Shown here: piece by piece, positions 6,241 to 57,100 of the stretch
Layout: every line of letters starts with the position of its first letter
Numbering within the stretch: the first letter of the stretch is position 1
DNA from: Carpediemonas membranifera BICM
Taxonomy: Eukaryota > Protista > Fornicata
Length of the DNA stretch: 64,000 nucleotides
Assembly (NCBI GenBank): GCA_019828565.1
Contig: JAHDYR010000053.1
Location: 1,145,044-1,209,043 of the forward strand
Reading direction: 5' to 3'
Made by a program: the position numbers and the translations under genes
The notes under the pieces: model-generated
The model's input: only the letters and a program-made list of their open reading frames with translations
The model's database searches: none
Told to the model about the DNA's origin: nothing

Positions 6241-6249
6241 GAGATAGCA

Positions 6250-8587: not shown

Positions 8588-8630
8588 GCTGTGTATATTG
8601 CATAAAGTAGCGCTCTTCCATGACGGGGTT

Positions 8631-10064: not shown

Positions 10065-10139
10065 TGTTGTTGGGAACGTTTATCCTTAAAATCTCCACTA
10101 AACTCTTGCGAGTCAAACCTGACAAAACCCTCAGCTACA
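10065..10139 (-). repeat. Gy-G 3' LTR (75 bp), contains the pol stop codon
   Basis: Direct repeat of 14064-14138; TAG of ORF 10135-12417 lies inside it. Confidence 0.9.
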
Positions 10140-17518: not shown

Positions 17519-20500
17519 CTATTCCACCTTGAAGCTGTTGTAAACCTTTGCCAGTTCCCGTAGTCCTGCCGTGAGGCCTTCCCAAATGTCCTCCGAGCCC
17601 CATATTATTAGTTGCTGTAATTCTAGGATGGGTCTTTCCTGGTACCATTCGCCCTGGGGGCCCTGCCTTACTTCCAAGTCCTTAGTTTTGTGCTTCGCTG
17701 CTGTCCACAGCTTTGTCCAAGCTTCTCCCCTGTCTACTGCCGGGCATTCACAGATTATGTGCGCTGCCGATCCTAGCCTCTGGCCCTCTGCCCACTCCCT
17801 GATCATTTCCTGCTTCCTTGCTGGTCCTGGCTTTTCCCTAATGATCCTGTAGAACAGGCTCACCTCCGACTCCTCCGAGCATAGGGGGCATAGTCTGCTA
17901 ATTTCTCTCTTCAGGTCAGCGCCTTGGGCCAGCTCTGTGATGGCTCTCATAGGGCCCTCCCTCTCTCTGCCGACGATGGGGATGGGCTGACATTGGCTGC
18001 AATGGATACAATTCTCTTCCATTCCGCCCTGCTTTGCCCCTTCCCAGCCTTTCGGTCTACCGTAGGCTTACCTTGCAGACACTTGCTTAATTTCCTTGTC
18101 CCCATGATTTCCATTAGTCCTAGTGCCGTACGGCTTTTGCACCGCTTCATCCACCCCCTCCTGATCGTTTCCATGCCATAATCCAGTAGCGCTGGTTTAG
18201 GGGCTCCTTCTCTGGTGCCCTCCAGTAGATGCTGCACTCTCTCCCTAGCTTCCCACATAACCGTGCCCCGCCCCCATTCTCTGTTTCTGACTGGTATATC
18301 CTGGTCCCTGTAGTTGACTATCCTTTTGACTGCCAGCCATTCCATGTGTGCCTGGAGGTCCACCCATCCATTCATCAGCCTCATGGCTGCGCCCCCTCCC
18401 GGTCCTGTTCCTGCCATGATTCCCTGCCAGTCATTCCAGATCCTTCTACCTCCCGGTGCGTTCCCCCACACCTCGACTCCGAAGAGGATCCTGGGCCATA
18501 TATATATTTCCAGTAGTAGCCTGCTTGCTAGTGCTGGCATGTTTGCCCTGGTCCACCCTGCCCATCTCACCAGTCTCTTGTACCTTTCGCTCTGCTCCTG
18601 TTTCCGCCTTATGCAGGCCGACATAGGGTCCTTCCCACTTGCGATCCATAATCCCAGGTATCTCGCCTCCTTCTCTGGCAGTAGTGTTACCCCCTCGATC
18701 CTGACTAGGGCTGTTCTGTCCACGCTAATCATTACATTCTTCTGGGCGTTCACCCTCATTTCATGCTCTCTGATTATGTCCACCATTATGTTGGCGACCA
18801 TCTGGCTATGCTCCGGTTTGCTCCCTGTGACCGCAGTGTCATCCACAAACATGGTAAGTGCTGCCGGTAGTCGGTCGCTGAGGTGGCTCGTGGTCCTTGG
18901 CGGTTCTCTGATGTCGTACCGTTCTCCCTTGATTTTCTTTCTGGCCAGGTGGGGCCAGTTAGCCATGAACAGCACAAACAGTGTCGGTGCCAGGACGCAC
19001 CCTTGCTTAACTCCCCTGTTGGTTCTTTTCCCATGCCTTTGCCCCCTTGACTGATATCCAGGTTTCCTTTATTGTGCCTTGAATTGCCCTGATCAAGTGC
19101 TCCTCCACCCCCATACCCTGTAGCTTATCCATGAGAATGTCCCTTGGTACCGTGTCATATGCCTTCTCGATGTCCAGAAAGATTGACGTGGTCTCACCCC
19201 CTCCTGGTGCCGCTGCACAATGTACTGTATCTGCTGGATGACGTCCCTGTCTGACTGGAAACCAGCCTGTTCTCTTGGTATGAACCTTTTCGTTGCTGCT
19301 TCCAGACGTATCTTGAGCAATCTACCATAGACCCTGTACAGCAGTGGTGTCAAGGATATTGGTCTATATGATTCCGGCTTGACCCTTGGCTTCCCTGTCT
19401 TGTGTATGGCCGACACTGTGGCATACTTCCATGCTTTGGGTACGTCGCCCTCCCTGTAGACCCTGTTGATGAGCCTCGTCACTTCCCTAAGGCCTTTCTC
19501 ATCCAGCTCTCTCAGCATGTCTCCAGATGTGAGGTCAGGCCCTGGTGCGGTGTCCCTCCTGATCCTTTTGATTGCGGCTTTGACCTCGCTTTCCTTGAAC
19601 TCATTTCCGTCCCTGCCCCTCCATGTCTTCCAGGTGGGTTCCCTGCCTCTGCTGACTCTAGCATACTGTTGCAAGAGGATCTCGCTGATGGCCGCCTTGT
19701 CCGTGGTTATCACTCCGTCCTTGAGGAGGCTCTCCGGCATTCCCTTGTATTGGTTGTCACACCACCACCTTCTGATGGCAGCTTCCACTGAGGCCCTTGA
19801 GGCCCTATACCCCCTTTGCACTTCTGCTGATGTCGGCCACCCATTTGGCCCTGCGCTCTCCCCAGTATTTCTCCAGCTCCTCTTTCATCCTTTCCTTCCT
19901 GGTCCTGTTGCCTAATTCTGTCCATGGGGTTCGCTGGAGTTCGCTCCACACTCCGTTCCCGAACACTTTGTCCCTTGCCTTTGCTCCCCTGTTGTTCACT
20001 GGGTCGCCCATGCATGCTCTTATAGTCTCTTCCCATTGGTCCGAGCTCTTGATCCTGTTCAGCTTTGAGACTGTGACTGGCCCCTCCTTCTTTTCATGGG
20101 CCAGGTGTGCACCTCGGGTATGGCCAGAGCCACGTCTCGCTCACTTCTGCCATAGTACCGTTGTTCCTTCCATGCTAGTGTGATTCCATTGTGTGCTGAG
20201 CCCCATACCCCGACCTTCTGAGACTCTACCACCTCAATCTCCGCCCCCTGGATTCCTGGTGTTGTCACTGCAAAGTCCGGGGTTGATGTTCCTGATGTGA
20301 GCGTCCCAGACTTGGGTATGATGGCTTTGAGCCTGTGCTTCTCCATCATATCCTTCCACCGGGTGGATCTTTCCATCTGGCCTGGGTCGATGTTCCAGTC
20401 TCCCATAATTATGGCCTCCATGCTCCCTTTCATGTCCATGATCTTCTGTATAGTGTCCCTGAATCCATCCTTCTCCTGCTTGCTGTGGCCGGATGGGGGC

Positions 20501-21291: not shown

Positions 21292-24200
21292 TTACTCCTC
21301 CTCCGTGGACTCCCCACTGCCGCTGCAGCTGTCCTCGGCCTGACTCGCTTGCTGTCCTTGTAGACTCTGCATTACCATGATGAACTGGGTCATCAGGTCC
21401 ATGGGTGAGATCTGCTTGGCCTTCTTATCCTTCTTGTGCTTGTGCCGGGGGATCGTGGGCTTCTCCTTGCTGGGCTTAGTCGCGGCGCCGGAGAGCACCA
21501 ACCTTCCGTGGCCTTGCTCTTGCATGAGTCGGGCAGCCTTGAGCGCTGAGATCTCTTGTTGCGCCTCTGCCAACTGCTTTCGGAGCCGCAGCTTCTCCGA
21601 GTCCATGCCGGTTGCCTGTCTGCTTCCAGACTCCCAGTCCGTGTCCTCTTCGTGCCTGCTTCTCTTTCCGCTGTCCGAGTCCATGATCCTACTCGTGCTG
21701 CCCTCCTTGCGCTTGAGCGTCGTGGAGGAAGAGTGATCCTTGCTGTTGTCCATGCCTCCCTCTGAGCCTCTACCGGCCCAGGTGTTCCCGCTGAACGAGC
21801 CTCTCATCTGCGTTCCCGTGTTGTCCTTGTCTCTCCCTGTCGTCTCCTCCGTGGTTACGATCCGAGGTCCTGTTCATGTTACCAGCTCTGTCGCCGGTTC
21901 TGTCGTCAGCTCTGACACCAGCTCTACCGCCGGCTCCGTGTCCTACCCTTCTGTCCTCTTCCCTGTCTCCATGCTGGTCGTGATGTCCTTGATCCGCGTC
22001 CTGGCCGAAGTGCCTGCCCACCATCCTGGTGCTAATCCGCCTCGCCTTTTCCCTCCAGGCCGTTGTCGAAGAACCTACTTTGGTATGGCTGTTCGGACTT
22101 TCCGTCGATGGTGGGGACATACGTGATGCCTGGGACATTGACTGTGTTGGCTCTGGGCTCGTCCGGGATAGCTGCCGAGACTAGTCTGGCCCCTTCCTTG
22201 CGCATACGGCTTAGGATGGTCCCAGCCTCGCTGACCCTGACCATGCCCCAGTCTCTCGGGATGAAGCTCGCCCCTAGGGTGATCCTACCCCTGTTCCTGG
22301 GGGCCTTGACGTTGACTATGACCTTCTCATAGTCCCTGAGGCTCTCTGCTAGGTCGTCGCAGCCCCAGACTCCTTGATGAGCCGTAGCCTCCTTCGAGGG
22401 CCACCACTCGTATAGCATGGCCATGGTTATGATGTCCTCCTCCCTTGCTGCCCCTAGGCCCTTCCTGACGCGTACCATGCGGAGCTGGTTAGCCGTGGCT
22501 CTTTCCATGATGGTCCATAGCGGGCTTCTCTCCAGTACACCTTCGTTGTCCATGATTGTGAGGGGGGCCAGTAAGATGCCCTTCATGCCCAACAGAACCT
22601 CCCCGAACCCGAAGCCGATGCCGAAGCGGTGTCCGTTGTCCGGGACTACGAGGATCCTGTCGCCGACTTCCCTGCTGACGTCCCTTGCGTCCCCGATCGG
22701 GTACGTGCCGAAGATCTCAAAGGTGTCCCTCCTTGTCGCGAATTCCGGGCCTCCCATGATATCCATGCCCGGCTCCGCCTTCCCGACTGCTTCCATGGTC
22801 TTGTCGAGTGCCTTACCCATGTAGTGGTAGACGTCTGGGGTGCTCATCCTCTCCTTGCATAGGGCCCTGATCCTGGCTGTGAAGACTACTGTATCCGCCA
22901 ACCCACAGTGGTAGCAACCCGCGGTGTGTCTGTGGTACGGACAGACTCCCTTGGGCTCGCTCCTGTTCTGCCATCCATTTGACCATGTTGTTACTGCTTC
23001 CAGGTAGTTGGCCTTGTCGAGGTTGTCCCTGAGGTTTTGGCCAGCCTCCTCCCTTGCCGTTGTTCTCCAGGATCTCTGGTAGCTTCTTCTCGTCCACCAG
23101 CCTAGCTTGGAAGAATTCCCTGGTTCCTTGCTCCAGTCCATTTGTGGGGTTCGTGAGGAGGAAGCTTTCCATCTCCACCCCCTTTGCATACATGATTATC
23201 TTCCAACCCTCCGACCTTTCGATCCTTGCCAGCTGAGCCGCCAGGCGGTTGGCCCAGTCCCTGAAAGTATGTATGTGCTTCTCATACTCGATCGGCGGCC
23301 GCCCCGTCCCGACCTCCACGAAGGTGGCCGGCGGCAGCCCCGTCACTGCCCATGCCGTGTACCTCGCTTGGTCCATGCTTGCTGCCGGTATGTCCTGGTA
23401 GTACAGGCCATGCCCATGTCCAAGAATGTCCCCAGTGCTGAGGTCAAAGAGTACGATCCCGCCCTCAACCGGGATGGCAGGGATCCCTGCCTTCTTGACG
23501 CCAGGGTCTGCGCACTCGAAGTCGATGGCTCCGATCACCAGTCGTTTCTCCTTGTCCTTTCTAGGCATCCTCGGCGGCTGACTGCTGTCCTTGTTTGAGT
23601 CGACCTCCTCGTCCTGGTCGATCTTGCCTTGGTTGGCCCCGACCATGTCCTTGTTCACTTCCAGGAGGCTGTCGTCGAGGCTTCTCCTGCCGGGCATGGT
23701 GGCCTGCTGGCGTCGTTCCTCCTTGTCCTTGACATGTTGCTCCTCGTCTCCGTCGATGACCGTGCTAGCGGACGACCTGTCCAGATCGGCATGTTCGTCC
23801 CTATTGCTGCGGACCGAGGTGGCCTTGAGCACTTCCAGCCTCACCTTCCGGAACGGCGGCTCGTTGCTAAGGGGGGTCTCCTCCCCTTCGCCCAGGATAT
23901 TGGTTCTGCCCTTCAGGTAGATCCCTGACTTGTTCCATGCTGCCTGCCATATGGCCGGGGCCTCCGGTGCCTGAAGCCTGAGGATGTCCCTAGCCTCCTC
24001 CATGAAGCGGCTGATGGACCATGCTGACGTGTCGCTTAGCTCTAGGATGACCCTGTACTTGCCGTCCTCTTGCTCGTAGGCCACTCTGGTGACCGGGCCT
24101 TGGTTTGCCGGATCCCATACCTTGTCGTAAGGCACGCCTTCTACGGCCTCGTCTCCATGAGCCCCTGATACCAGTATGAACGACCCTTCGGCCTTCTTGA

Positions 24201-24798
24201 CGCTGTCCCTGTCTACATCCCATTCGATGGGCCCATCTTCCTTCGGCTTGAGAATCGCCGTCTCGATGTCCTTCTCAGATGGCCATCTTGCCATGCCAGT
24301 GAAGCCCGCTTTCAGCGTCTTGGGCTCCAGTGCCTGTGCCATGTCCTTTGCTTCCTCGTCTCTGGGGTTGAGCGCCTCTGTGAGCATGTAGAAAAGGTCG
24401 CGGAGGCCGTGGATGCCGCATGGGTTCCTGAGGATGATGTCCTTGTTGTCAGTGACGCCGGTTGCGAAGAGGATGCGTCTGGCGTTCATGATTACTTCCT
24501 TGCGTCCTTTGGAGTTCGCATTGAGCGACTTTCCTGTAAACTTGCCTGTTCTACGAAGAAGTAGGGTCCTTGAATCGTTCCTTTCAGCGAGGAAGCTGTC
24601 CAGTAGTTCCCTGATGTCCTCCCACTGCTTCTGCGTGGAATCCCTGATCCTTGTCGGTATTTCTACCTGCATTGTTGAGTGCAAAATTTCTCCCCTTTTC
24701 CTAGTCCATAAACTGGGTCGGAATTTTTGGGTCCGAAAGTCGGGCCACATGTACATATCCGGGTGAGGTCTCCGTCCAGGCCTTCCAGTTTCTCCCAT
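21292..24798 (-). CDS. LINE-1 ORF1 (about 1150 aa when stitched) with Maelstrom/DEDDh-like domain and C-terminal coiled coil
   Basis: ORFs 22813-24798, 22032-23189, 21770-22138 and 21292-21807 are colinear with LINE-3 ORF1; IDFE...PVEG...AKGVEME...CPYH...HCGLAD. Confidence 0.85.
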
Positions 24799-27269: not shown

Positions 27270-30120
27270 TTAAACGTAATTAGCAAGGTTCTTACGGGCC
27301 TTCCGAGCACGGCGCTTAACCTCTTCGACGTGGGACACAGACCTTAGGTGCTGTTCCGTGCGTTCATCATAGTTTTTCCACTTAATGGTCACCATACCGG
27401 TTTTCCAGTCGATTTTCTCGATCTTTTCGATCTCAAACTGTTCCTTATCGGATTCGGCTAATTGCTTCATTTGAGTCTCTTCAAGATCTGTCTCAAATGG
27501 CATCAGTTTGTCGACGTGGGTAACTCTAATGTCTCCTGTGACAATAGATTGCAGCTTCACCTTATGGTTCGGCAGTACCTCGTGAATCTTCCACGGGCCT
27601 CTGTTCGGGCAGTCGAGCTTCTTGGGGTTTTCATGTTTCCATAGGACATAGTCACCTACTTCTACCCCCTTCGTCTCGATCTGGCTCCTGGCGGATGTGC
27701 CTTCCCTTACGGAGTCTTCCAGTGTCCTTAGGACCTCCTGGAGAGATTGCTTGAACTCAACAATCCTCTTGTCGCCCCACTCTGCCCCGTCCCACTCAGT
27801 GGAAAATAGGTTGTGAGGCTGACCGAATATTAATTCATGAGGGGAGAACTGCGTAGCAGTGTGTGTCGTGCCATTAAGTATCATTTGAACGGTTGGCACC
27901 AATGTTGCCCACTCGTCTCGGCTCGCAATAGCGAGGACCATCCACCTTAAGTGGCGACCAATCTCTGCATTTCTCCTCTCCACCAGCCCATTACTCTGGG
28001 GGTGATATGGGATCGTGAAGTGCCGAAGCACCTTCAGCTCCGTGAGCATCGCGTCCAGTATGGAGTTTGCGTATTCCGGACCCCCATCAGATTGGAGTTC
28101 GAGAGGGACACCGTATCTCGTAAAGACTCGGTCCCATAGGGCCTGTGCAACTGTGCGTGCGTCATCGCTGGCTACGGGGATAAGCTCCGTATACCTAGTG
28201 AACATGTCAACTGCTGTGACGATGTATCGTGCCCCCAGATTATCCAAGGGCAGTGGTCCAATGGTGTCCACAGCCACGGTCTCCCATGGCTTGCCTCTAA
28301 GGCTGGATCCTGCTTCGACCTCAATGTAGTTTCTTATTCTCGACTTGAGGCAGATCGGGCACCGCTTAACGGTTCGTCTGACATCATTCAGCATGCTAGG
28401 CCAAAAACCCATCTTCTTCAGCATCTGATACGTGGCATTTGAGCCAGTGTGGAATTGATGTGCCAACTGCAGGAAGGTGTCGCGTAGCTTACCGTCCGGG
28501 ATGATCGGGACTCCTTGTACGAAGTACGTAGAGTCCACCAGGGTGCAGCCGTCTAGGCCTTCCCAACCGATCCTATGTTCCTCAGGGAGGCTGGCCTGGG
28601 CCTCGCTGATATCCCATAGGGACGGTCTCACCTCGCTCTCCTCTGCTTCTAGCAGATTTAAGGAGTGTGAGTCCCGGCAGGTGCTCTGCACCCGCGACAG
28701 CATATCTGCCATGACGTTAGCGTTACCAGATATATGACTAATGGTGAACGTGTAGTCCGATAGGACGGTAACCCAGCGAAGGAGCTTCTTTGATAGCTCT
28801 TTCCTCTGTAGTAAATATACCAAGTTGCGGTGATCCGTATGAATCTGGATATCATCCTTCAACCTAAAGAGTTGGGCCATATCGGGCCGCGTCAGGCAGT
28901 ATATGATCGCATGAAGCTCTTGTTCATACGTGGGCCACCTGGACTGGGTGGCACTGTGGCTCTTAGAGAACAGTGAGACGAGTTCCCGGTTACCGGACTC
29001 GTCCTCCTGGACTAAAATACCCCCGAGTCCTTCGTTAGACGCGTCCGTCTCAAGGATCCATTTCTTAGAAAGGTCGGGGAAACTCAGGATCAAGTCGGAT
29101 GATAGCCGTTCCTTGAAAGCTTCGAAAGCTTCATCCTGCTCTTGGGTCCAGGTGATCAGCTGTTGATCTTTTGACGCTTTAAGCATGTCATTAAGCGGCT
29201 TTAGGAGGCGCGACGCGTCCGATACGAACTGCGCGACATAGTTAAATGATCCTAGAGTGCGCTGAAGCTGCTTCGGAGTTTCCGGTCTGGGGATGGCTCT
29301 TACGGCATCTACCCTCTCGGGGGAAAGTTGCTTCCCTTTTTCTGAGATAATATATCCCACGGCCTCGATGTGATCTGTACCAATTACACATTTTGGGCCC
29401 TTCAGACGTAGTCTATACTCCTTGCAGATGTCAAAGACTTTCTCGAGGATCTCTAAGAACTCCTCTTCTGTCTTGGCGTAGACCATAAGGTCATCAATGT
29501 AAATGTCAACTCCTTTGTGGAGGACCGGGGCGAACGCCTTTTGCATTGCCTTTTGGAACCTAGAGGGTGCATTGCAGAGCCCAAATGGGCACCGGCGGAA
29601 CTCCATGTAATGGTCCGGTGTGACAAAAGCTGTCTTCGGAATGTCCGTCTCCTCCATGCTCATTTGATAATAGCCCTGCCGTAGGTCAAGAGCCGCAAAA
29701 ATCTTGCATCCAGCTGCCCTATCGACGAACTGACGGAGGTTTGGTAGTGGGAATTTGTCCTTCACTGTATTGGCATTGAGGGCCTTGTAGTCGACACATA
29801 GTCTGATCTTATCTGATCCCTTGTGTCCCTTACGGACAACTACAATGGGTGAGCTGAACGGTCCCGATGAGGGTTGGATTATCCCGTCCGCCACTAGGTT
29901 CTCGAGCTCATCATTCACGAGCTCATTTGTTGTCTCAGCGAGGCTTCTAGGCCGCAGCTGGACGAGCTCCTCACGATCTATGAGCTCTATAGACATTTTG
30001 TCCAGGCGAGACCCTTCACTAGGCAGGGTTTCGTCAAAGACCTCTTCGGCCTCAAGAATCTTAGATATGATTTGGTCCCGAATTTTAGATTCGGGGACCG
30101 TTACACCAAGACTTCCTGGG
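27270..30120 (-). CDS. pol: Gy-A pol (RT-RNase H-integrase-divergent chromodomain)
   Basis: CVDYKALN, LDLRQGY, PFGL, YIDD, TDASN, TDHRNL, SDGGPEY, SNGLVER. The frame is open upstream of ATG 29996 to about 30120. Confidence 0.95.
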
Positions 30121-31180: not shown

Positions 31181-31288
31181 TGTCAGCCATTTATATATGA
31201 GATACGTATTTGATACGGTCTTGATCCGTCCAGCTCGACACCCTTGTGTCGAGCTCTCTTTGTAAAGTCTTTTTCCTTAGTGATCACA
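31181..31288 (+). repeat. Gy-B 5' LTR (108 bp)
   Basis: Direct repeat of 37508-37615; TATATAT box and internal 10-bp hairpin. Confidence 0.95.
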
Positions 31289-31299
31289 GTAAGCTTACT
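31288..31299 (+). promoter_or_regulatory. Palindrome AGTAAGCTTACT at the primer-binding-site position (Gy-B)
   Basis: Perfect 12-bp palindrome starting at the last base of the 5' LTR; no TGG tRNA-type PBS. Confidence 0.85.
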
Positions 31300-31308
31300 T
31301 CCAAACTA

Positions 31309-37619: not shown

Positions 37620-37856
37620 GACGTCATCAGGCATAAGGCGCTGCTCCACCCAGGCGATGAACGCGTCCAACTTGATGGTAGCGGGGTCATGGTCATCCGC
37701 TTGTAGCTCTAAACGCGTTGACGGGGAAAGGAGGATGCTTAAGGGGAGTTTCTTGTGAGTGTCGAGGAATATTGTGGCTTTGGCCTTGAAGTCTTGGAGG
37801 GACTCAAAGGTAGCTGTTTCGGTATCGATTGACGGAGTTTCAAACGTCAGGGACAT
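37620..37856 (-). CDS. gag: Gy-A gag N-terminus
   Basis: ATG 21 nt after the 5' LTR; continues in frame at 31180. Confidence 0.85.
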
Positions 37857-37866
37857 CGCAATGACT

Positions 37867-37940: not shown

Positions 37941-38672
37941 CGGGCCCCCGTTCTGCCTGGCACCCGCCACCGGGGCCTTCTGCTCGGTTTCCCCCTACAG
38001 GGCTCCTCTCAGGGATATGTTCTCCATACCATTCGACCCAGTTTGCAATTTTTCAGGCACCCGCCGAAGCGGTTTCGGGCTTGGCGTTTGCCGTACCACG
38101 CAATTGGGCCAGTTATGAAACCCACCGATCATCGCTGGGTAGCTATATGATTCACGGCTGCGTTCGGGCTCTTCCACACTTTCCGTTCCGGCATGGATCC
38201 CCTCCTCAAGGATTTGTTCCCTATAGGGCTTCTTCCTAGCTTCCGGCTGGTTCCAAGTTTTGGGTGCCGGGCCGTTCGGCGCAGCTCTGATTTGGTCCAG
38301 GTGCCGCCCAGGTGGTATTGTTGCCTTATGGTTACCCTCCTGTTTGGCTGCTGCGCCCCGATACCTCGCACGTACGTGTATACATGTGCATACGTGCCCC
38401 GCCCTATGGCTCTGGGTTATTTCTTATACGTGTGAAGAGTGTGCCGGTTCTGCCGGCTGAATGTTGTCTACGTTCCCAGTATGGGTGAGCGTTTGTGTGT
38501 TAGCGAGATTAGTGTTCGGGGTTGAGTCCCCCTTCCGCGGCTGGGTGCTACCGGGATACGTGGGGCTTGCGTCCCCCGCTGATCCCAGGAGCGCTCCGCT
38601 TCGGTTGAGGCGGGGGGTTGGGTCCCAGTTTGACCCTGGTCCCAGAGGTCATAGGATTCTGGGATGGTGTAC

Positions 38673-41600
38673 TTACCCGTCTTTCCGGAGGTTCAGAAGG
38701 GCACGTCTGCCGTTCTGCAGTCCCTCTCTGACGGTATGGTCCTCGCTGCGGAGGAGCCAGAGCATTTCCAGGATTTCCCTTGAGTTGTACCACTCCGCCT
38801 CCTGTCCTTGCCTTAGGGCGTGGTACTGTGTGCGTAGATGCGCCTCCGCCAGGATGTCATTCCATCCTTCTGGGCGTTCTACCGCCTTGCATTGGCAGAT
38901 GATGTGGCTTTGTGTTCCCAGGGGCTGGTTGTATGCCCATTCTGAGAGGATTTTGGTGGTTTCCGCCGCGGTTCTGGTGACAGTGTACAGGCGAGTAATG
39001 GTGTCACCTTCTGAGTCCAGGGTACATAGGGGGCAACACCGCTTGATCCTGCTCAGGAGGGCCTGGGGCTGGCCGATCGCGCTCCCAAGTATGGCTCTGC
39101 TTCTGCCACTGTTGCTGGGGGAGGGGAGTGTGTTGGATGCAGTCATGATTACTCTCTTGACTTCCCGTCTGGTTATCATCTCACCCTTGATCATTCCTGG
39201 TTTCTTGGGTCTCTTCCCTTGCTGCATGCTGAGGATGACTTCCGGGGCTAGTACTGTTGCCACCCCTTTGGCCGTTCGGCTCCCGGTGTGCAGTAGTTCT
39301 TCTGCTGTGAGGGTCCAGCCTCCCCTCTTTGCTCTTTCCCTGGCCGGGTCGTGCGCAGACTCATAGAGCCTCACCGCTCTCTGCCCCATATCTGCCTCCC
39401 AGCACATCCATCCCATTAGTACACGGGCGGCTCCTCCTCCCCCTGGTCCTGTGCCTGCCATTAGGCCGCGCCAGTTGTTCCAGATGGCTCTTCCCCCTGG
39501 CGCTTGGCCCCAGATCTCGATCCCGAACTCGATCTTGGGCCAGAGGAAGGTTCTGAGGATGGATTCCGAGGTGGCGGCCGGGGTGGATCCTTTGGTCCAC
39601 CCTGCTCTCCTTGCCAGGGCTAGGTATTTCCGGGATTGTGACGTCTTCATTTTGATGCATGCTGCCAACGGATTCTTCCCGCTGGCTAGCCAGAGTCCCA
39701 GATACCTTGCTGAGTCTGACGCCAGTGTGGGAGTTCCTTGGATGCTGACCGCTGCAGTTACGTCGGTACTTATCACCACACTTTTGCCTGGGCTGGTCTG
39801 GAGTCCATGGGCTTCAATTACCCTGACTACTGCGTCTGTGCCTTCTTCGGCGAGCTGCGGGGTCTCGGCTGAGATGCTTGTATCATCTACAAACATTGCA
39901 ATGAGGCAGTTTTTGGGCCTATCGTCCGTTGGAGGGAGGCAGGGGTCCGGGATCTCTCTATGCCGGAGGTACAGTGCCGCCTGGCTTAGCCAGTTAGCTG
40001 TGAAGAGGATGAACAGAGTGGGGGCCACCACACATCCTTGCTTGACCCCCATGTTTGTTCTGGACCATGTGCTTGCCCCTCGTACCGAGATGTACGTTTC
40101 TGTAAGTGTATTTCGGATGGCCCTCGTCAGTCTTGGGTGTACCCCCATGAGCGTCAACTTGTTCACCAGCAGGTCCCTTGGGACCGTATCATATGCTTTT
40201 GCTATGTCAAGTAGGACGCTGGTACGGTTTCCGGACTGGTGGAGTTGGGCTAGGAGGGCTATGTGATCCACTACAGTTTTCCCTTTCATGAACCCAACTT
40301 GCTCTCTGGGGATGAACTTCTCCACCGTCGGCCTGAGGCGCCATTTCAGTATCCTCCCGTAGGCTCTGTATAGGAGGGGGGGTGAGGGAGATCGGTCTGT
40401 ACGAGCTGGGCGTGAGCTTGTCCTTCCCAACCTTGTGGATAGGCGACACCGCTGCATACTTCCATGTGGTTGGCATGGTCCCGCTGTCGTATACTTTCGC
40501 GAGCAGGACTGTGATTGCCTCGTACGCTGACTCGGGGAGGTCCCTCAGACAATCTCCAATAATCCCGTCCGGGCCTCCGGCCGAGGACTTCCTTATGGAC
40601 TTGACCGCCGCTGTCACTTCTTCAAGCGATGGCGGATGGTCCTCCATGTCCGTTTCCGGCTCGGTTTCCCAGGTGGGTTCCCAGGTGGGTTCCTTCCCGG
40701 AGCTTACCTTCGCGTACTGCTCCTGGAGGGAGTCTGCAATCTCCCTCTGCCTTGCTAGAATCTTGTTTCCAGCCTTCAGCATCACCGGGAGACCGGCGTG
40801 CTGCTTCTCGTTCCAGAAGCGGAACACTTGGTTTGCGAGGATCCTTTTTGTCGTTTTGTACCCATCACGGGATCCAACCTCAACCTGCTCATTCCAGTCA
40901 TGTTGGAAGGTCCTCCATGATCTGCTCAGTGCTCCGTTGAGGGACTTTTTGATATCTTTGGCGGCGGTTTTGCTCCAGGTGGAGGCTTTGGCCAGCCGTT
41001 CCCATACCTCACTAGGGATACGTTCCTGGTTTTCTACAGCGAATGGGTGCCTTCTGGAGGTAGCAAACCCGGTGGACAACCATTTCCTTATGAGAGTCTC
41101 CATCTCGTCCACTGGTATTTTGCTGTCTAGTGGTGGCCACTCTTCTAGCTTGGGCCCTGTTCTCCTGGGTTTGACCAGCCACGTATCGATCCGTGGGATT
41201 TCCAGTCTCTTTGATATCTCTGGTTTCCCTGTCGGGTTGCTATCCCAGGTGAGCTCTATGGCTTTGTGTGCCGACCCCCAGTGCCCGATTGTGGTCTTGT
41301 CTATTACCCTAACAACCGGGTTTTGGATACCCCCTGTTACCGCTGCATAGTCTATTGTGGACGTTCGGGAGTTAGTCCCGTACGTCGGTGCAGTTGGTGC
41401 TATTGGGGTGAGGTTCCATCGCTGGAGGGTCATCGCAGTTGCTTGCCTGAGTTTCCCTGGCCTCCTGTTCCAGTCCCCGATGATGATGATGTCACACCCC
41501 TCATAGTTCGCGACGGTTTGCTCTAGCATCCGGTCGAACTCCTCAATCTCGGGTCGTGCACATCCACTATCGGGAGCGTAGATATTGATGACTGCCGTGG

Positions 41601-41928
41601 CCCTCGATGCTTTGAGGATGCTTACTTGGATTCGTGGGTTCGTCCCGTCGGACACGCCTACGTCCCATTCCGCTTTGGAGTGCGGGCTAATCAGTGTGGC
41701 CAGTCCCTTTGTGGGTCGCTTGCGCGTTGCCTCTAATGGCTTGACCTCTCCTGCACAGGCGTACTGGAGATCTACCCAGCAAGGGATGGTGGTATTACCG
41801 TACCGCTTGGTTTCCTGGAGGAGGATCGCATCAGTCCTTATCCTCTTGCGGATGGATAAAGCTATGGATCCGCTGTAATCGTTTGCGCCCGCTAGGTGCC
41901 CTTCGCTGTTTAGCGATATTATTCTCAT
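38673..41928 (-). CDS. LINE-2 ORF2 (APE-RT-CCHC), one frameshift in a homopolymer run at about 40380
   Basis: ISLNSEG, LQET, INIYAP, GDWN, TIDY, SAH; YRPISL, LDIAKAYD, GVKQG, FVDD, YLG; CPLC...HIICQC. Confidence 0.93.
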
Positions 41929-42502
41929 TCAGGTTGTTCTGACATAAACTGCGGGAGTTACCCTGCGCGCACTAATCTGCTCTTTGTAGACATTCCCTTT
42001 TTGGGCGTACCTTTTGGTGGGTTGCTGAGGCCTCTAACCGAGCAGTCGTTTCCTTTTGGGCAGGCTTGTGCCTGTATTCCCTTAGTTCCCGGCCTAGGGC
42101 ATACCATTCCCTTTCACAGTCGGGGCCTCACGATGCTTGTCGGCATTGCTGCCGGTCTCCGCTTAGCTTCCTTCCTCGCCGCATGGCAGGACCATTACCT
42201 AACGAGCTTAGGTGGGAGCGACAGTGGTTGTTGCCCCTCCCAAGGCTGGAGTTACAGCCTGCCGGACAGGCAGGGCTCTTTTTACCTTTTGGTAACCCTG
42301 CCCCCGGCCCCTGTGGGGCACAGGGGTTTGTTGAAAAAAAGAATGTGTTGCATTTTTGCTCCCGCCGGAATGGTTCGCCGGTGTCCATTTGGACTTTAAG
42401 GCCCTACTAGTCACAGCCTGGCCATACATGCTGGTTCATATATATACTTTTAGCTCAGACTTATATCACACTACCCTCTGCACCTCTTACTTATGATTGT
42501 TT

Positions 42503-45500
42503 CTACTCTCCTTCCTTCTCCTCGTCTCTCTTCCTTCTCAGGTCAGACCTGAAGTTATCCATCTTGGCTGCTAGGGTGAAGCTGAGGGCTTCGTTGGTTG
42601 CCGAGAGTCGGGCCGCGCGGCTGAGTAAGTCCTCGTTCTCTTCGGTTAGAGACGAGCACTTCTCCGTTGTCTTCCTGAGGTCCTTCCGCATCTCGTCCAA
42701 CGCAGCTTGGGCTGCTCTCCGGGCTTCCCGTTCTTCCTCCAGCTCCTGGCTTTTGGCCTTGAGCTCGTTGATGGTTCTGGCTGCAGCTTCTTCCAGCTGT
42801 TGTCTGACCTCTGCTTCTCGCCGGGCCATGGCTTGGTCCAGCAGGGCCGCTATGCCTCTGCCCAGGTCGGTGTCCTCCTGTCGTGCTCTTTTTGGGCTGC
42901 AGGTCCTCTTGGTCCACCTGTCTGACCTGGCGGGTCTTGGCTGATGGGTTGGGGGTATGGGGGGGCACAGCTCTTAGTTGGAGGGGGCCCGGGCTCTGTT
43001 CGCTCTGTCCTGCTACTTTGCGGTTGTTCAGTGACAATTTGCCCGCGTGGAGGGCCATATAGGCCCCCTATGCCGCCATTCGGCAGGTAGACCTCCGTCC
43101 TCCTGTGAAGCATCTTGGCGAGTTCAGTAGCCCTTCGTCTCACCTTTGTTCGAAGCGCCTGCTTCCTCTCGGTCCTCAGTCTGTTCTTGGCGTTAGTGCT
43201 GGCGCCTTCCGGGAAAACACAGTTCAGCGTGTCCCATGGCTTCCCCCCTTTTGGGTGTTCCACGCCTGAGCCCGCCAGGGCGAGTTTGCCTATCCAGGAG
43301 GCGCTCCTCAAGGTGCCCACTCGCCTCTTCCCTCTTTCTGCTGGTTCATCCGTGATACCCCAGTCCCGGGGGAGGAACGAGGGGAGGAAGTTGATGGAGC
43401 CTGTCTCCGGGTCGACACACATGTTGGCCAGGAGTTCTCGATCGTCGGCTGGGACCTCCGTGAAGTAGTTGAAGATCTTCTTCCTGGCTTCTCTGCCCAT
43501 GTGGCCTCCAGCTATGTCGAATTTGTGGACGGGCATCAAAGACGCCGCTTGGGATAGGGTCATCGTTTTGGTGTCGCTGACGTCTAGAGTAAGCATCTTT
43601 TCCGCGTCTATTTCCGTGGGCTCCCCCTCAGGTTCGCCCAAGGGAAACCGTCTTGGACAGCGCGGCGGCGCCCGTTCCACTCCGAGTGGATTTCCAGGAG
43701 GATGGGTCGCGCTGGTTCGCCTACTCTCGCGAGCGATTCTGGGTTTCCGATGATCACGGCTGTTCCTTCCAGGGCTCTGGTGATACCCTTTCCGGAGCTG
43801 AAATCGTTTTCCTCCCAGTTGGTCATGATAATCTGGCCCCGTTTGGGGTTCTTGGTGCCAAAGAGGTTGACTTGTTGGGACAATGGGGTTAGGCGACCGG
43901 CCGCCACGGTGCCGGGGCCGTGTCTGGCGTTGACTTTGGTCGCCAGGTCCTTGTATTCATCATGGTACGGCGACTCCCCTGCCCATGAGCATGCTTCCTA
44001 GGGCTGTGAGGTGGGCTTCTACCTGCCCCCAGTCCCAGCCTAGGTTGTCTCTCATCCAGAACGCTGTTGCTAGTCTGGCGTAGAATATGGAGACATCTGC
44101 TAGGGCGCAGTGGCAGTGGTGGGGTGCGTGCTTGTGATAGGGGCACACCACTTTTGCCTCCGGGCGCTGTTGGTACCTTCTGGTCCAGGTCCGGCCCAGT
44201 TCGGACTGGGGTCGGGAGGGGAGGCCGGTGAGGCTCTTCTCCCCACTATTGGGGTAGAACCAGGTCAGCGTGTCGAGGATGTTGGGGAAGATCGTGTTGA
44301 GGTCAGTTTCATCCATGAGGCGTAAGCTTAGCCAGGTGCGGAGGTTCCCGTCTGGGACGAACTTCTCACTGGTCAGGATGCTTCTCTCAGCCTCGACTCC
44401 CTTAGCCACGATGTGGACGTGGGTCTTCTGTGGCCCCGAGTCGTCTTCCAGTCTCTTCAGCTCTGTAGCCATCTCGGTGCACCATCGCTTGGCGTGGGGG
44501 AAGTCTGCTTCGTATCCCTTGGGGGCTTTGCCCGTGGTGTCGTCGACAAACGTAGCTGGTGGGCAGCCATGGATGTAGTGCGTGACCCACAGACATTGGT
44601 CCAGGGTATCCACTGTGATGTCTTCCCCAAGCATCCCGTGCATGTAGTAGAGGATTTGCTCGTTAGCTGGGTCGAAAATCAGTGCCGCCCCTTCGCAAAT
44701 GATGGCCTCGTCTCCTCGGTTGGATCTGGCTCTTCCTTCCTCAAAGTCCACCATAGCGATCAACTGCCTGGTGGTGTTGGCTCGTTGGGTGATATTGGAA
44801 CGAGGCGGGCTAGCTCCCATGTTGGGCCCGCATGTGCCCTTGTTTGGCGTGGTGGGTGTGTCATCAGGGCCGGAAGTCCTGCTGCCGCTCGGGCCCAGGG
44901 GGGTTTCTTCTTCGTTAGTACCCAGGGCTCCATGAGATGCCCCGTCCCGTACGGGCTCTATAACTTGGGTCTGCCCCGTTGTGAGCCAGTAGTTAGTGAT
45001 GTTGCGCGTCAGAAAGGAGGCAGACACCAGTTCGCGGGCAATCCTCGCGGGTGGGGGCCAGAGACGCCTGGTCTTATCCCATGCCGACCAGAGTTCGGGG
45101 AAGCCGGGGACTGACCACCGTTGGATGAGGTCTCTGACCTCCTCCCTCAGGTCTGCCTCTGCTGCCGAAGGCTCTTCTTCCAGGGGTGGGGGTGGGAAGA
45201 CTGGCCTCATCACACCCCTCGGTTCTGCTGTAGATGAGGATCTCCTCGACGGGGCCCTGGGTCCAGATCTGGATGGGCGTGCCGTCTGGTCTGCGGAAAC
45301 CTCCCTCCGGGGGGTGAGGGGCGTGGTAGCCTTGCCCTTTGGCTAGTTCCCGGCCTAGGTCGGCCCAGAGCTTCTTGTTTTCGCGTCCTAGTGAGGGGGA
45401 GCCCTCTGGCTGCAGCTCCCGCGGAGATGGCGTGTCCGGCGGCATGGAGGAGCCACATTGCAGCCTCCATCCCGTACTTGGTCTGGATGCCGTTGCCTGA

Positions 45501-46352
45501 GATCGAAGAGTGTCCTGCAGCTTGCAGCGATGTTGCCACGAGCTCTAGGAGGAGCGTCCTTGCGACCTTTCCCGTTCGGGCAGTGAAGTCCGTTGCGTCA
45601 TCTCTGGTGAAGACCATGGCAACGTCCCTTGTGGGAATAGCCGCATCTGCTGAGGCTCTGATGCAGTCCCATTCGTCCGGTGTGGCCAGTTGCTTGCCCA
45701 GTGGCGTTAACGACTCCTTGATCCCATTTGGGGTGGTGTTTGCGCAATCCAAGGCGTCTGGGACGCTTTGGGAGCTGTTCGAGGTCATTGTGTGGCGTGG
45801 TCTCGAAAAGTCCCGGTTATGGATTCGGCCGAGATCAAGGCCCTCCTCCACGGGGAGAAGTGATGGGGTGTGTTGCTCACTAGCTGGTGCCGTCTGGCTC
45901 GTCCGGTGGGGATGTGCTACGTACTTGGAGTAGTCCGCCTGGACTCTGGGGTAGAACACAAATTTGGGGGACCCTGGGCGAAGCCGGCTTAGTGTCTCCG
46001 CCTGCTCTAGGTCCAGCCGGTTCCCTTCAATGAATAGCCAGTATGGCTGTTGGGCGGCTTTTGTGTACCGTCTCAGGAGGGGAAGTGATGCAAACAGCTT
46101 CTTGGCCCGGCTTTTCCGGAGCTCCCCTGGGCCTTCCTTTGCTGTAAAGCTTCCCTGTTCTGGGTCTACAATCTTGTCGTATCCTATCGCGTTGCCGAGC
46201 TGGATAATGGACGTATTTGCTTTTTCCCTTCTGGTTTTCCTGAGATCCCTTCTGGGTGCAGCCTTAAGGGCGAATAAGCCATAAATCATGCTTTCTTCCC
46301 TATCTGGCATGTCCCTGTTGGGATATTCCCCTGTTTCCATTTGGAGTGGCAA
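42503..46352 (-). CDS. LINE-2 ORF1 (stitched) with Maelstrom-like domain and C-terminal coiled coil
   Basis: ORFs 45210-46352, 43960-45213, 43608-43907, 42850-43680 and 42503-42829; VDFE...ICEG...IHGCPP...AKGVEAE...CPYH...HCALAD; FLPRDWG shared with the other LINEs. Start uncertain. Confidence 0.8.
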
Positions 46353-48305
46353 AAGGCGGGAAGTGCACTTTTGCCAGCTTCTTGGAGGGGCTTGAGGAGG
46401 TCTGGTGGAGGTTCCAAGGGGCGCCAGCCAGCGATGTCCTGGTCTTGTATGGCTCCTTTCCCTTCCTCAGGGCGGATGGTTCAGGGGCGAGGTATGCGAG
46501 GTTTGTTGCGGACCTTGTTTCCACACAAAACATGTCTGGCGAAAACCCAAAAGGGAACCTTATTGCAGGGACAGGGAGCATCGCCCCACACGGGGCTGCT
46601 GTCCCTTATTCCCCATGCGTCCGTTCCATCTCTCCTTCCACCTTCACGCCTCCTCCTGGCCATTCGGCCGGCGCCTCCGCTGCCCAGCGGTCCCCAGAGG
46701 GGGAGGTGCATTACCAGGGGTTATGCACTCCGATCCCTATCGAGTCCTTGGCCCGAGTACGGCCTGGACTCCGATTTCGGGGGCGCCGCCTCTTTCCCCG
46801 GGAAGCAGGGCCCTCTTCGCACTCCGACGGGGGATCCCATATTCCCCTCCGGGCCCCAGGGTAGTCCCTTGCCTTGTGGCGGCAGGGGCTTCACCGCTCC
46901 TTCTCGGGAGTCCCCGACTCCTGGCCCGGCGACTCCTCGGGGTTGGGAGGCGCATTTCCTGCGGACCATAGCTGACGATTTTGCCCAGGTGGACGTCCTG
47001 GCCAGCCGGTGGCGGGAGCGTGCCGCTGCCTTTTCCTACCTGGCTCAGAATTACCGTGACGAGGACCTGAGTCCCCACGAGTCTAAGTCGGCTCGGGGTT
47101 TCGACGCTGAGCTGAGGGGCCAAATGCGGGTCTATAAGCGCCTTCGTGCTCGCATAGACGCCCGGCTGCACCAGCTGGTTGCCATTCACGCCCCTCGTCC
47201 TGTATCTTGTGGTCGCAGCCCGGTTGTTTCCTTCCTGGGTCGCGTCACTCCCAAGAGGTTGTGAGTCCTGGTAAACACCGTGATGGTTTATGCCTTTTGG
47301 CTTCGGCTGGGCGTTTCTTGTGGGGCTGTGGACGGGGCCCTCAGCGCTCCCGGTCTGTTGTCCGGTATGGCTGGTGTACTGGGGGCCTGTTGTGGTGGCC
47401 CTGTTGCCTATGCCGGCGGCGGGCGGCGATCCCGGCTCTCGTGGCGATGACGTCCACAAGCCCGGTCTTGGGCGGCATGAGAGCACGGGCGCCGGAGTAG
47501 TGTGGCCCAGTGGCCTCCCAGTGAGAGCCTATTGGCCGCCGGTCCCGGTGCTCTCGGGTTACTTTGCCATATGGCCCCAGTTAAGTTGTCTGAGGCAATC
47601 GTGTCGCAGTGCCTCTGGGGCCTACTGCGGGTACCGGTTACGGTAGGGGTTTCAATCATAAAGGTGGCGCAGTACGCTTGTTCGCGTTGATTTCCCTTGT
47701 GGGTTTGTGCGAGGAGCGTTTAGTTGCGTCTGGTCCCCTTGTGGGTCCCAGGAGCATGGGCGGTAGGTTTTGTTTGTTGTTAGAGTACTGTGTATTCTGT
47801 CAACGCTTTCCTACCGAGGCTAACTTATTCCCTTTTGGGTGGTTTTTGCCTCTGTGCATTTTTTGGGCACACGAGGACGATCATCTGTTGCTCGACATAG
47901 CTTGGCGCACGGCGAGGTATACAGGGCAGGGGAGTGGGCTCCAGGTGAGGTGGTGCGCACCTCACCTGGAGCAGCCAGTTGTCCTCTGCCGGCCCGCTCT
48001 GGCGCTAACCTGCTTCGCAACGGGCGATCTCCTCCGGGGAGCAATTTGCTTCCCCAATGTGCCCTATGGCTAGTGGGTTAGGAGAATACTTCCCATTTCT
48101 GCTCTCGTGCCCCAGAGCAGACGAACTCTTGGTCCTGAAATTACCATTTGGTGGATGCTGGCGCCGCGGGGCACCGTCGCTCGCTTCGAGCTCGAATAGC
48201 TTTCAATGAGATCCGATAAATCCCGATTGCCAGCTTTTGGCCTTTTTCCGGTTGGTTTCGTCAACTTCCCATACCGGACATTTCAACTGCCATGGTCGCA
48301 CATTG

Positions 48306-54149: not shown

Positions 54150-57100
54150 TTAATCGGTCTCCGTTGAGTTGCCACTGTCACTGCCATCATCGCTCTGGTT
54201 CTCGGTTGCCATCCCCTGTTGTTGCTGCATGGTCTTCATCACCGTTGACACGATCTGGGCCACTAGCTCCATCTGGTTTAGCTGTCTCGGCTTGCGAGAC
54301 CTCTTTGTCCGAGTCCTCTTCTTGTGGCGGACTACCCTGTGCTCCTTGCCGGTACCCTGGTTTCCCTGGGTGTCAGCCGGTGCTGGGGTTGGCGTCGCCT
54401 GCTCCTCCTCCCTGCTGTCCCTGGCCCTGAGTGCGAGAATCAGCTTCTTGGCTTCATCAAGTTCCTTCCTGAGTTCGTCCCTCTCCGCGTCGCTGTCACT
54501 CGACTGTCTGCTTCCAGCCTCGTAACGGGCGTCGCCGTCGAGCTTGCCCCTCTTTCCAGCCCCTGTGTAGCTCACCGCCCTGTCCTTGCCACTCCTCTTG
54601 CCGGTCCCATGAGGGGGTGAGCGGCGTCTGATCTCTCCGGAGTCTCTGCCCTGATCGTCCCTGCGCTCTCTGTCCTCATGATGAGGCCTGACGTCCCTGC
54701 GCTCTCTGTCGCACCGATGGACGCCGTTGTTTCTGGGCTCTCTCTCGTCTCTGAGGGTTCCGTCGGCTCGGCGGTTGTTGGTATAGAGGTCATCTCGGCC
54801 TACTGGCCCGACCGGCGTGCCAATCATCTCGGTGAGCCGTCTGATAGATCCCTCTATGCCCATGTCCGAGTAATCGACCGTGTAGGGTCTCTCCTCCTTT
54901 CCATCTCTTGACGGGATGTACTTAACCGTCGGCCTCTGGGTGATCTTGCAGTTATCCTCTGGCGGGATGGTCGTGGACACCATACGGGTCCCCACCTTCT
55001 TCATCCGTCCCAGTGTCGTCCCTGCCTCTCTGACCCTGATACAGCCCCAGTCTCTCGGGATGAAGGCCGCTCTGATGGTTGCGCTATACCCTGGGGGTGC
55101 CCTGACGTTCGCTATGGCTTTCTCCTCGCGTCTGACGCTCTCTGCCAGGTCGTGGACTCCCGGCTGACCCTGATGAGCAGTATCCTCCCTTGAGGGCCAC
55201 CAGCTGTAGACCATCGCGATGGTGACGATGTCCTCGTCCCTAGTAACTGCCCTGCCAGCTCTTCCCTGCAACATCAGTCTCTGAATGTGGGTCGTGTTCT
55301 CATGGATCGACCATATGGGGACTCTCGTGGTGACTCCTCTCTCCATGACCGTGGTTGGGGCCAATAGAATGCCCTTCATACCCTTAATGACCTCGCTGAA
55401 TCCGAAGCCGATCCCATAGCAGTGATCGTTGTCCGGGACCACTAGGATGCGGTCGCCCTCTTCCCTGCTTAGGTCCCTGCTGTTGCCGTACGGGTGCCCT
55501 CCGAAGATGTTGAAGGTCTCACGCCTGTACGCTACTCCGTTGCCTCCGCAGAGGTCGTCTCTGATCCCTGCGTCCCTGACCGTGTCATACATGCTGTTGA
55601 AAGCGTTACCCATCGCACTCTCCAGATCCGGCGTGCTCATCTTCTTCAGCATCATGCCCCACACCTTCGCCGCGAACAACGTTGCATCTGCCAGCGCACA
55701 ATGGTAGCACCCTGCAGTGTGCCTGTGGTACGGACAGGCCCCCTTCGGGAGCTCCCTGCGCTGCCATTGGCTGGCCCATATATCTGCCATCTCCCTGTAG
55801 TTCTTGATCTCGTAGTTTGCCCTGTACTCTCTTGCCTTATCCGGGGCGAGCTCCTCGATGGCGTCGGCCAGCTCGCTATCGTCCACCAGCCTCATTCTAA
55901 AGAAGTCCCTGGTGTCCCTGTTGAGCCCGTTGACCTCGTTCGTCAGGGAGGAACTTCTCCATGTGGACGCCCTTGGCATGAAGGACTAGCTTCCAGTTCT
56001 CCCTGGTCTCTCTGTCTCTCAGCTTGGCTGCGAGCCGCGTGGCCCACTCTCTAAATCTGCTGAAGTGCTGCTGATAGTCCATCGGCACCTCCCCTGTGTC
56101 CACTTCCACGAACGTCGCTGGGGGAATCCCCGTCACTGCCCACGTCGCGTATCTGCTCTGGTCCACCTTGTTGGCCGGCAGGTTGGGCTCATAGAAGAGG
56201 CCGTGGCCATGGCCAACGACCTCCCCCGTCTCGACGTCCACTAGCACGAGCCCCCCTCTGTCGGCACCGCACTGATCCCTGCCCTCTCACTCCCAGGATC
56301 TCCACACTCGAAGTCGATAGAACCGAGGATGAGCTTCTTCTGACCCTGACTCTGCAATGCCTCCGGTAGGCTCCCTGCTGATGCACTTCCCTCTGATGCT
56401 CGGGGTATGCTCTCTTCTTCCTGCTGATCAAGCTCGGCTCCAAGGCCCCTTCTGGCGCTCACTCCTTCCGCTTGTGTCAACACGACCTTGGGTTTGGGGT
56501 CTTCCTCTTGGCTGGTCTGTGCGCCGCTCTCGTTGTCTGACTCTTCTTCCCTGTCCCTCTTTTGGCGGCGGCTGGTGGCATTGATCACCCTGGCCCTGAC
56601 GTCAGAGAAGACGAGCTTGTTGCTGAGCGGCGTCTCCTGTCCTTGTGCCCTTATTGCGCCTCTGCCCTCCGTGTTGACTCCTGTCTTGCACCAAGCTGCC
56701 TGCCAGACCGCCGGCGCCTCCGGGGCCTGCAACCTGAGGATGTCCCTGCCTTCCTCCATGAATCTGGTGATCTGCCATGCTCTGCAATCTCTGATGTCGA
56801 TGAGGACCTTGTAGGTGCCATCGTCCTGCTCCATAGCGATCCTGGTGACCAGGCCCTGGTTAGTGGGGTCCCACACCTCCTCTCCTGCGATGGCCTCGAC
56901 GGCTTTCTCATCTCCATACCCTGATGTGAGCGTGAATGTGCCCGTCTCTCTGCCCTCAATGCTGTCTCTCTCACTGTCCCACTCGATGTTGCTCTGTTCT
57001 CTCGGTTGGAGGATGGCCTCTTCGATCTTGTGGTCGGAAGGCCACTTGCTCATGTCCCTGTGCCCTGGTTGGATGGTGACGTTCTCCTTGGCCTCTGCTA

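Follow-up and report, generated by a model that had tools for sequence, protein, structure and literature searches.

The window analysed here is a 64,000-nucleotide stretch of the genome of the fornicate protist Carpediemonas membranifera (G000:C39:1145044-1209043, where G000 is the C. membranifera assembly of 24,237,836 bases in 69 contigs), and positions given without a further label are positions in it. Three long interspersed nuclear elements (LINEs) lie in the window, all on the minus strand. In each of them the sequence for a predicted nuclease domain is followed downstream, on the same strand, by sequences for an apurinic/apyrimidinic endonuclease (APE) and a reverse transcriptase (RT), which match Pfam Exo_endo_phos and RVT_1, and because APE and RT follow each copy of the domain, the elements are classed as LINEs. 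Taken together, sequence comparison and structure prediction make it likely that the large first protein of these LINEs (about 700-1200 amino acids, encoded by the first open reading frame, ORF1) holds a divergent, protist-type Maelstrom (MAEL) domain between two other ORF1 domains, and that this domain combines a DEDDh-fold 3'-5' exonuclease with a Glu-Cys-His-Cys zinc site. The elements and their domains are located as follows.

37961..48289, minus strand: LINE copy 2, 'A' subfamily, about 10.3 kb; 5' limit approximate, 3' end without poly(A)
43960..45213, minus strand: nuclease-bearing ORF of copy 2, 417 amino acids (ORF list)
44026..44775, minus strand: predicted MAEL-type DEDDh domain of copy 2, uninterrupted (alignments, script-checked codons, AlphaFold model, fold matches, hhalign)
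25270 to at least 16626, minus strand: LINE copy 1, 'D' subfamily (blastn against L052; APE and RT fragments)
22782..23556, minus strand: predicted MAEL-type domain of copy 1, interrupted by a single frameshift at 23053/23054 (tblastn with the intact D-subfamily domain)
at least 57340 to about 49611, minus strand: LINE copy 3, 'F' subfamily, ends imprecise (APE 52954-53832, RT 50613-52979)
55575..56340, minus strand: predicted MAEL-type domain of copy 3, with frameshifts near 56286 and at 55947 (frames and tblastn)

Conservation of the domain within a LINE family

Alignments of the domain reveal a set of residues that is invariant across subfamilies only 25-50% identical to one another and across two organisms. 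In the numbering of copy 2, the N-terminal part of this set comprises D25-x-E27, E43-G, H61-G, G85-x-P-P, A-K-G-x3-E145 and D170, and the C-terminal part reads C226-P-Y-H229-x7-H237-C238-x-L-A-D242. The key codons of copy 2 were checked by script: D25 (44746-48), E27 (44740-42), E43 (44692-94), H61 (44638-40), E145 (44386-88), D170 (44311-13), C226 (44143-45), H229 (44134-36), H237 (44110-12), C238 (44107-09) and D242 (44095-97). An initial annotation of this DNA had reported these motifs in all three LINEs, with retention even in the divergent second one; the motifs are indeed present in all three, uninterrupted in copy 2 and with frameshifts in copies 1 and 3, and the key residues of copy 2 are intact. 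Its spacing of the E-G motif, about 14 residues after D-F-E, has to be corrected, as the Glu lies 16 residues after the Glu of D-F-E. Its placement of both a D-E...E...H...D set and an E-C-H-C set holds in that the residues of both are invariant, including the D25-x-E27 and H237-x4-D242 pairs that mark DEDDh nucleases, but the acidic residue of the second exonuclease motif (ExoII) is an invariant Glu (E145) rather than an Asp, so that the set is DEEDh.

Six-frame searches of the genome recovered at least 107 matches to the nuclease domain, which fall into at least seven subfamilies: A to F, as compared above, and an additional subfamily, G. Between subfamilies, the proportion of nonsynonymous differences (pN) is 0.33-0.52 and that of synonymous differences (pS) 0.58-0.81, with synonymous sites saturated. 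This comparison indicates that the domain was under purifying selection while the family diversified, since pN lies well below a saturated pS. The number of matches, the low pN and the invariance of the same residues across divergent subfamilies together mean that the motif set, as read from the alignments, is not the product of chance.

Some annotations call fragments of these sequences as stand-alone hypothetical proteins, as would be expected if the domain were part of a host gene lying beside, or interrupted by, LINE insertions. That explanation is hardly conceivable given the genomic distribution of the domain, which occurs at least 100 times in repeats 99% identical over 5-9 kb and always upstream of APE-RT. 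Moreover, in subfamily G the MAEL-type domain (residues ~704-930) is encoded in one 1700-amino acid open frame together with APE and the beginning of RT, a single-ORF layout in place of a separate ORF1 (L062:2869-8112 on G000:C6 and L063:2415-7493 on G000:C9), and the annotated protein P0014 has the same nuclease-APE-RT fusion. The same ORF1-ORF2 layout also recurs in a second assembly, GCA_002919055.1, which derives from a different organism, as no sequence in G000 is more than 34% identical to its elements; there, contig L059 (PPCM01001449.1) carries at 1244-9015 an apparently intact element of this kind, with an ORF1 of 1250 amino acids followed by an ORF2 of 1177 amino acids with APE and RT. 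The elements of the window are young, multi-copy APE-type LINEs of C. membranifera.

Relationship of the domain to Maelstrom

The closest tie between the LINE domain and a named family runs through a single protein. An exhaustive HMMER search with a six-subfamily profile against 1.84 billion representative proteins returned 16 matches, 15 of which come from LINE ORF1s of C. membranifera or GCA_002919055.1. The remaining match, P0015 (profile E 1e-4), is a 352-amino acid transcript product of the amoebozoan Rhizamoeba saxonica that scores 69 bits on Pfam Maelstrom (PF13017), for which the cut-off is 22, and that finds the Bombyx and Drosophila Maelstrom chains as its best sequence matches in the PDB. 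When compared with P0015 in hhalign, the LINE-only profile A5 aligned at 98.5% (E 2.4e-15) in a stretch of 177 columns that begins at the D-x-E strand and reaches the H-x4-D helix, and the LINE profile A3 at 97.9% (E 3.8e-13), whereas Escherichia coli DnaQ and RNase T reached 0.09% and 0.43% in the same test. The family is therefore specifically MAEL-like in its sequence and not generically DEDDh-like. The database proteins close to the query were C. membranifera hypothetical proteins only, a word-indexed protein search with copy 2 gave one such protein as its single match, the same kind of search with P0015 returned only P0015 itself, and no relatives of P0011 were found in the GTDB genomes.

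The putative zinc site points in the same direction. In Bombyx Maelstrom, the zinc ligands are E137, C290, H293 and C302, with D122 and N124 at ExoI and R306 at the position of the ExoIII Asp (PMC4408791, Chen et al.). The LINE spacing C226-x2-H229-x8-C238-x3-D242 is that of Bombyx C290-x2-H293-x8-C302-x3-R306 (PMC4408791), and E43 aligns with a Glu of P0015 that in turn aligns with Bombyx E137. The putative ligands E43, C226, H229 and C238 thus occupy the family positions of the MAEL zinc tetrad, an assignment made at the level of sequence only.

Structure prediction yielded two AlphaFold models. Model 1, from six sequences without P0015, had a mean predicted local distance difference test score (pLDDT) of 58.6 and is too poor for ranking families. 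Model 2, from 16 sequences, reached a pLDDT of 83.3 and a predicted template-modelling score (pTM) of 0.82, with the topology b1-b2-b3-a-b4-a-b5-a. Every Foldseek match to model 2 was a DEDDh nuclease or a Maelstrom protein, and Maelstrom had the highest TM-scores (0.50-0.51, E 2.4e-4). In VIA-align, all five Maelstrom entries led the list with Z-scores of 13.0-13.6 and root mean square deviations of 3.3-3.6 over 176-187 residues, followed by DinG-exo (Z 12.8) and RNase T (Z 12.6). A search of 48,161 chains that was independent of Foldseek likewise placed two Maelstrom chains first (Z 13.3 and 13.2), ahead of DinG-exo (12.6); farther down, the nucleoproteins of lymphocytic choriomeningitis virus (LCMV; Z 9.8, 18% identity) and Lassa virus (Z 9.7, 21%) had the highest identities in the list. 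Maelstrom was also the first named family in a language-model search, ahead of Rv2179c-like, DEDDh_C and the arenavirus nucleocapsid C-domain in that order, although these results have the standing of leads only; the arenavirus nucleoprotein ExoN (Arena_ncap_C) had a feature score of 0.84 there and no sequence-profile match. In a viral structure library, the matches were confined to generic DEDDh nucleases of phages and giant viruses.

Several observations weigh against this account of the LINEs or limit its force. The poor model 1 placed RNase T marginally ahead, and the alignment behind model 2 included P0015. Foldseek E-values for model 2 put Orn, RNase T and 3'hExo first (2.8e-5), and in structural alignment Maelstrom is ahead of DinG-exo and RNase T by less than 1 Z unit, a margin within the tie range of the tool. 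Pfam Maelstrom (PF13017) missed all LINE proteins at E-values up to 1-10, and the six-frame genome search with it was likewise empty; PDB sequence searches with one LINE protein and with profiles A3 and A5 gave nothing relevant. The MAEL link depends on one intermediate protein, P0015, and the Glu at ExoII departs from the canonical Asp. Finally, the frameshift of copy 3 near 56286, just after the E-G-G motif, is common to several F copies that are 99-100% identical (L051:2770-2812; L053), from which it follows that broken copies spread or were copied recently, and an intact domain in cis may not be needed for the spread of every copy. Trans-complementation of the broken F copies is possible, because an F-subfamily variant that is 97% identical retains an intact domain (L064:1262-3331).

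With margins in the tie range and P0015 in the alignment, the structural comparisons therefore establish a DEDDh fold for the model and only favour MAEL within it: the predicted fold of the domain is DEDDh/RNase H-like. The profile and structure searches that the initial annotation proposed have accordingly borne out the fold, through the matches of model 2, and support its MAEL-type identity, through the profile match to P0015, the hhalign contrast and the zinc spacing; the link to the Maelstrom profile runs by way of P0015, and a direct match to PF13017 was not reached. Since the Pfam gathering score is not attained, we call the domain a divergent relative of PF13017 rather than a curated member. 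Pfam scans of the ORF1 pieces and of full-length ORF1s (E up to 1-10) found no relevant family, RNase_T (PF00929) and its relatives included.

The same evidence bears on whether a LINE instead captured a generic DEDDh exonuclease of the RNase T, ERI-1 or DnaQ-like kind, whose Cys/His pattern came to look MAEL-like by convergence, an outcome that the initial annotation had foreseen should the best match be a generic family. The Foldseek E-values, the narrow VIA-align gaps and the lack of a direct Pfam Maelstrom match all lean that way. Yet the sequence evidence favours Maelstrom: DnaQ and RNase T stayed below 1% in the hhalign test, of the 1.84e9 proteins searched, one MAEL protein passed E 1e-3 but none of the many RNase_T or DnaQ proteins, and both the C-x2-H-x8-C-x3-D spacing and the Glu after strand 2 that aligns with Bombyx E137 agree with Maelstrom. 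Capture of a generic exonuclease is, on balance, quite unlikely.

Anatomy and genomic setting of the elements

An intact ORF1 of this LINE family spans 700-1200 amino acids and consists of an N-terminal region of 250-400 amino acids, the nuclease domain, a conserved C-terminal domain and a tail; the C-terminal part has an F-I-P-R-D-W-G block followed by a tail that is coiled-coil-like and basic. C. membranifera and the second organism have this layout in common. The two further conserved ORF1 domains that flank the nuclease are represented by L052:2760-3593 (N-terminal) and L052:4659-5237 (C-terminal), which correspond to 23900-24700 and 22250-22800 in the window, and neither has a match in Pfam, the PDB sequences or the Atlas. 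RNase H domains gave only 3 matches in the whole genome, so the LINEs carry none. The remaining features of copy 2 are these.

45210..46352, minus strand: N-terminal ORF1 region, in a frame that differs from that of the nuclease ORF (ORF list)
42555..43680, minus strand: C-terminal ORF1 region with the F-I-P-R-D-W-G block and basic tail, split over two frames (ORF list, alignments A2 and A7)
38673..41928, minus strand: ORF2, with APE at 40207-41928 and RT at 38673-40457 in two overlapping frames (Pfam)

Copy 2 is 99.2% identical to the genomic copy L054 over 8.95 kb, and its ORF2 matches Pfam Exo_endo_phos, Exo_endo_phos_2 and RVT_1 (the last at E 1e-27). In other copies of the 'A' subfamily, the frame of the nuclease ORF extends to 991 amino acids. 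The N-terminal ORF1 region of copy 2 resembles the N-terminus of the annotated protein P0001, in which it is continuous with the nuclease domain; the separation of the two into different frames is common to copy 2 and its near-identical relative L054, whereas they are continuous in the related B subfamily, to which P0001 belongs. At least 27 genomic copies of the 'A' subfamily end at the same base, window position 37961, without poly(A) or a simple repeat, and the 3' untranslated region of the subfamily is about 710 nucleotides long (37961-38672). The flanks of copy 2, whose 5' boundary is only approximate, have no repeat of at least 7 bases in common that could be a target-site duplication. 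Just past its 3' end, at 37700-37940, lies a different repeat, copies of which on contigs C25, C68, C67 and C1 are 100% identical.

Copy 1 is 99.4% identical to L052 over 5.4 kb by blastn, and similarity picks up again at 17590. About 2.3 kb of extra, RT-bearing sequence at 17590-19909 is absent from L052, either because L052 has lost it or because copy 1 was rearranged. Its domain was recovered by tblastn with an intact D-subfamily query as two pieces that are 100% and 98.9% identical to the query. Copy 3 is 98.9-99.8% identical to L051 and L053 by blastn. For copies 1 and 3, intact paralogues elsewhere in the genome were used by reference.

The window as a whole is a transposon-rich region. 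Ty3/gypsy-type long terminal repeat (LTR) retrotransposon polyproteins with RT, RNase H and integrase lie at 10135-12417, 27270-29996 and 31246-33975, interleaved with the LINEs, and one of the three stretches also has a CCHC knuckle and a protease. The published C. membranifera genome comprises 24.2 Mb in 69 contigs with a guanine-plus-cytosine content of 57.1%, and the DNA-replication and repair machinery of the organism is unusually reduced; repeats were masked in that study, and retrotransposons are not discussed (PMC8516963). With regard to small-RNA pathways, the host genome has two Piwi-domain (Argonaute) genes, G000:C7:87108-88037 and G000:C65:23790-24737, in open frames of about 800 amino acids. 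A quick six-frame look at the genome did not find RNase III, Pfam RNase_T or Pfam Maelstrom genes, and six-frame searches with PF13017, PF00929 and PF00636 gave zero candidates, all of which are weak negatives.

Predicted activity, possible roles and significance

The predicted catalytic set of the LINE domain is D25, E27, E145, H237 and D242, in which E145 sits in the helix that follows strand 4 in the model and is matched by a Glu in P0015. Because these residues are invariant, we infer that the domain is probably an active 3'-5' exoribonuclease. A LINE ORF1 protein is typically an RNA-binding chaperone, and this, together with the Glu in place of the canonical Asp at ExoII, would fit a domain without catalytic activity that serves the ORF1 protein as an RNA-binding or chaperone module, its acidic residues being structural. 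Such a module would be the counterpart of animal Maelstrom, which binds single-stranded RNA without cutting it (PMC4408791). A silent module is nevertheless very unlikely. None of the five catalytic positions varies among subfamilies 20-30% identical or between the two organisms, whereas animal MAEL has lost these residues; in nidovirus ExoN, activity is compatible with a Glu at ExoII, a motif listed there as D/E (PMC7968707); and the amoeba MAEL that retains DEDD is active, EhMael of Entamoeba histolytica (EHI_192630), with both DEDD and ECHC kept, being an exoribonuclease that works with Mg or Mn (PMC4408791).

The protist MAEL proteins are the closest comparison. They include EhMael, P0015 and the trypanosomatid RIF4, which was noted as a MAEL homologue by Zhang et al. 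TbRIF4 of trypanosomes is a DEDDh exonuclease that prefers double-stranded RNA (dsRNA) and is essential for RNA interference (RNAi), where it converts small interfering RNA duplexes into single strands for Argonaute (PMC3359990). The LINE domain shares with these proteins the DEDDh fold, the catalytic residues and the Glu-Cys-His-Cys set. In contrast to them, however, it is not the product of a host gene but lies inside a retrotransposon protein present in more than 100 copies, has an insert of 50-70 residues before the Cys-His-Cys segment and lies below the cut-off of Pfam Maelstrom. Structurally, the LINE domain matches animal Maelstrom best (Bombyx 5AF0, Drosophila 4YBG; Z 13.0-13.6), with identical zinc-ligand spacing, but the structure-based identity is only 11-12%. 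Unlike the LINE domain, the animal protein has lost DEDD, is not an exonuclease, has an HMG box and acts in host silencing guided by PIWI-interacting RNAs.

The arenavirus nucleoproteins break down dsRNA and in this way dampen sensing by the host. Those of Lassa virus (3R3L) and LCMV (4O6H) resemble the LINE domain in being DEDDh nucleases encoded by a selfish element, in sharing the zinc tetrad and in having a catalytic His that directly precedes the last zinc Cys (PMC4408791; PMC7968707). The arenavirus nucleoprotein has both motifs and is an active 3'-5' exoribonuclease (PMC4408791), and its exonuclease domain helps to suppress host innate immune signalling (PMC7968707). It differs from the LINE domain in residing in an RNA virus protein, in its longer loop between the His and the last Cys and in a Z-score lower than that of Maelstrom.

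Within retroelements, the precedent that comes nearest is found in bdelloid rotifers, whose LTR retrotransposons and Athena elements encode a DEDDy (RNase D-like) ORF3, which is likewise a 3'-5' exonuclease fold carried by a retroelement, likewise has Glu at ExoII, and in two families has a Cys-His-Cys motif; unlike the LINE domain, it is DEDDy rather than DEDDh, forms the third ORF of LTR or Penelope-like elements and occurs in another host kingdom (PMC5408684). The authors of that study described DEDDy exonucleases as previously unreported in retrotransposons (PMC5408684). Known LINE ORF1 types have the RRM and C-terminal domain of L1, CCHC knuckles, PHD, or the SGNH esterase of CR1/L2/RTEX. 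The ORF1 described here shares with these its position upstream of APE-RT and its coiled-coil-like and basic C-terminal tail, but their Pfam domains were not detected in it, and its enzymatic module is a nuclease. Full-text literature searches found no report of a LINE or other retrotransposon ORF1 with a MAEL or DEDDh domain, in keeping with the statement in the initial annotation that no LINE ORF1 with MAEL was known.

These comparisons suggest how such a domain might work. D25, E27, E145 and D242 would hold two metal ions (Mg or Mn), with H237 as the general base, while C238, which adjoins H237, would hold a structural zinc together with C226, H229 and E43. The nuclease would travel within the LINE ribonucleoprotein, where it could degrade element-derived dsRNA or small-RNA duplexes and so blunt the host Argonaute pathway. 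Among the roles considered, this counter-defence is the one that we tentatively prefer. The trimming of read-through transcripts to the precise, non-polyadenylated 3' end is a somewhat doubtful second role, and the removal of template RNA after reverse transcription a third and less likely one.

Maelstrom is known as a host factor in transposon silencing, its nuclease-competent protist relatives act in RNAi, and the nearest viral look-alike disarms dsRNA sensing. Against this background, an abundant and recently active LINE family with a MAEL-type domain, all catalytic and zinc residues retained, extends the few known kinds of LINE ORF1 domain by an enzymatic one, and offers a testable candidate either for a counter-measure against small RNAs or for the 3'-end maturation of non-polyadenylated LINE RNA. 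A bolder proposal, which we regard as unlikely, is that the LINE MAEL nuclease suppresses host small-RNA silencing by destroying dsRNA or siRNA duplexes of the element, and that catalytically intact retroelement domains of this kind were the pool from which the host Maelstrom and RIF4 proteins and the arenavirus nucleoprotein exonuclease were drawn. The LINE MAEL-type domain also bears on the origin of the lineage that comprises MAEL and the arenavirus ExoN.

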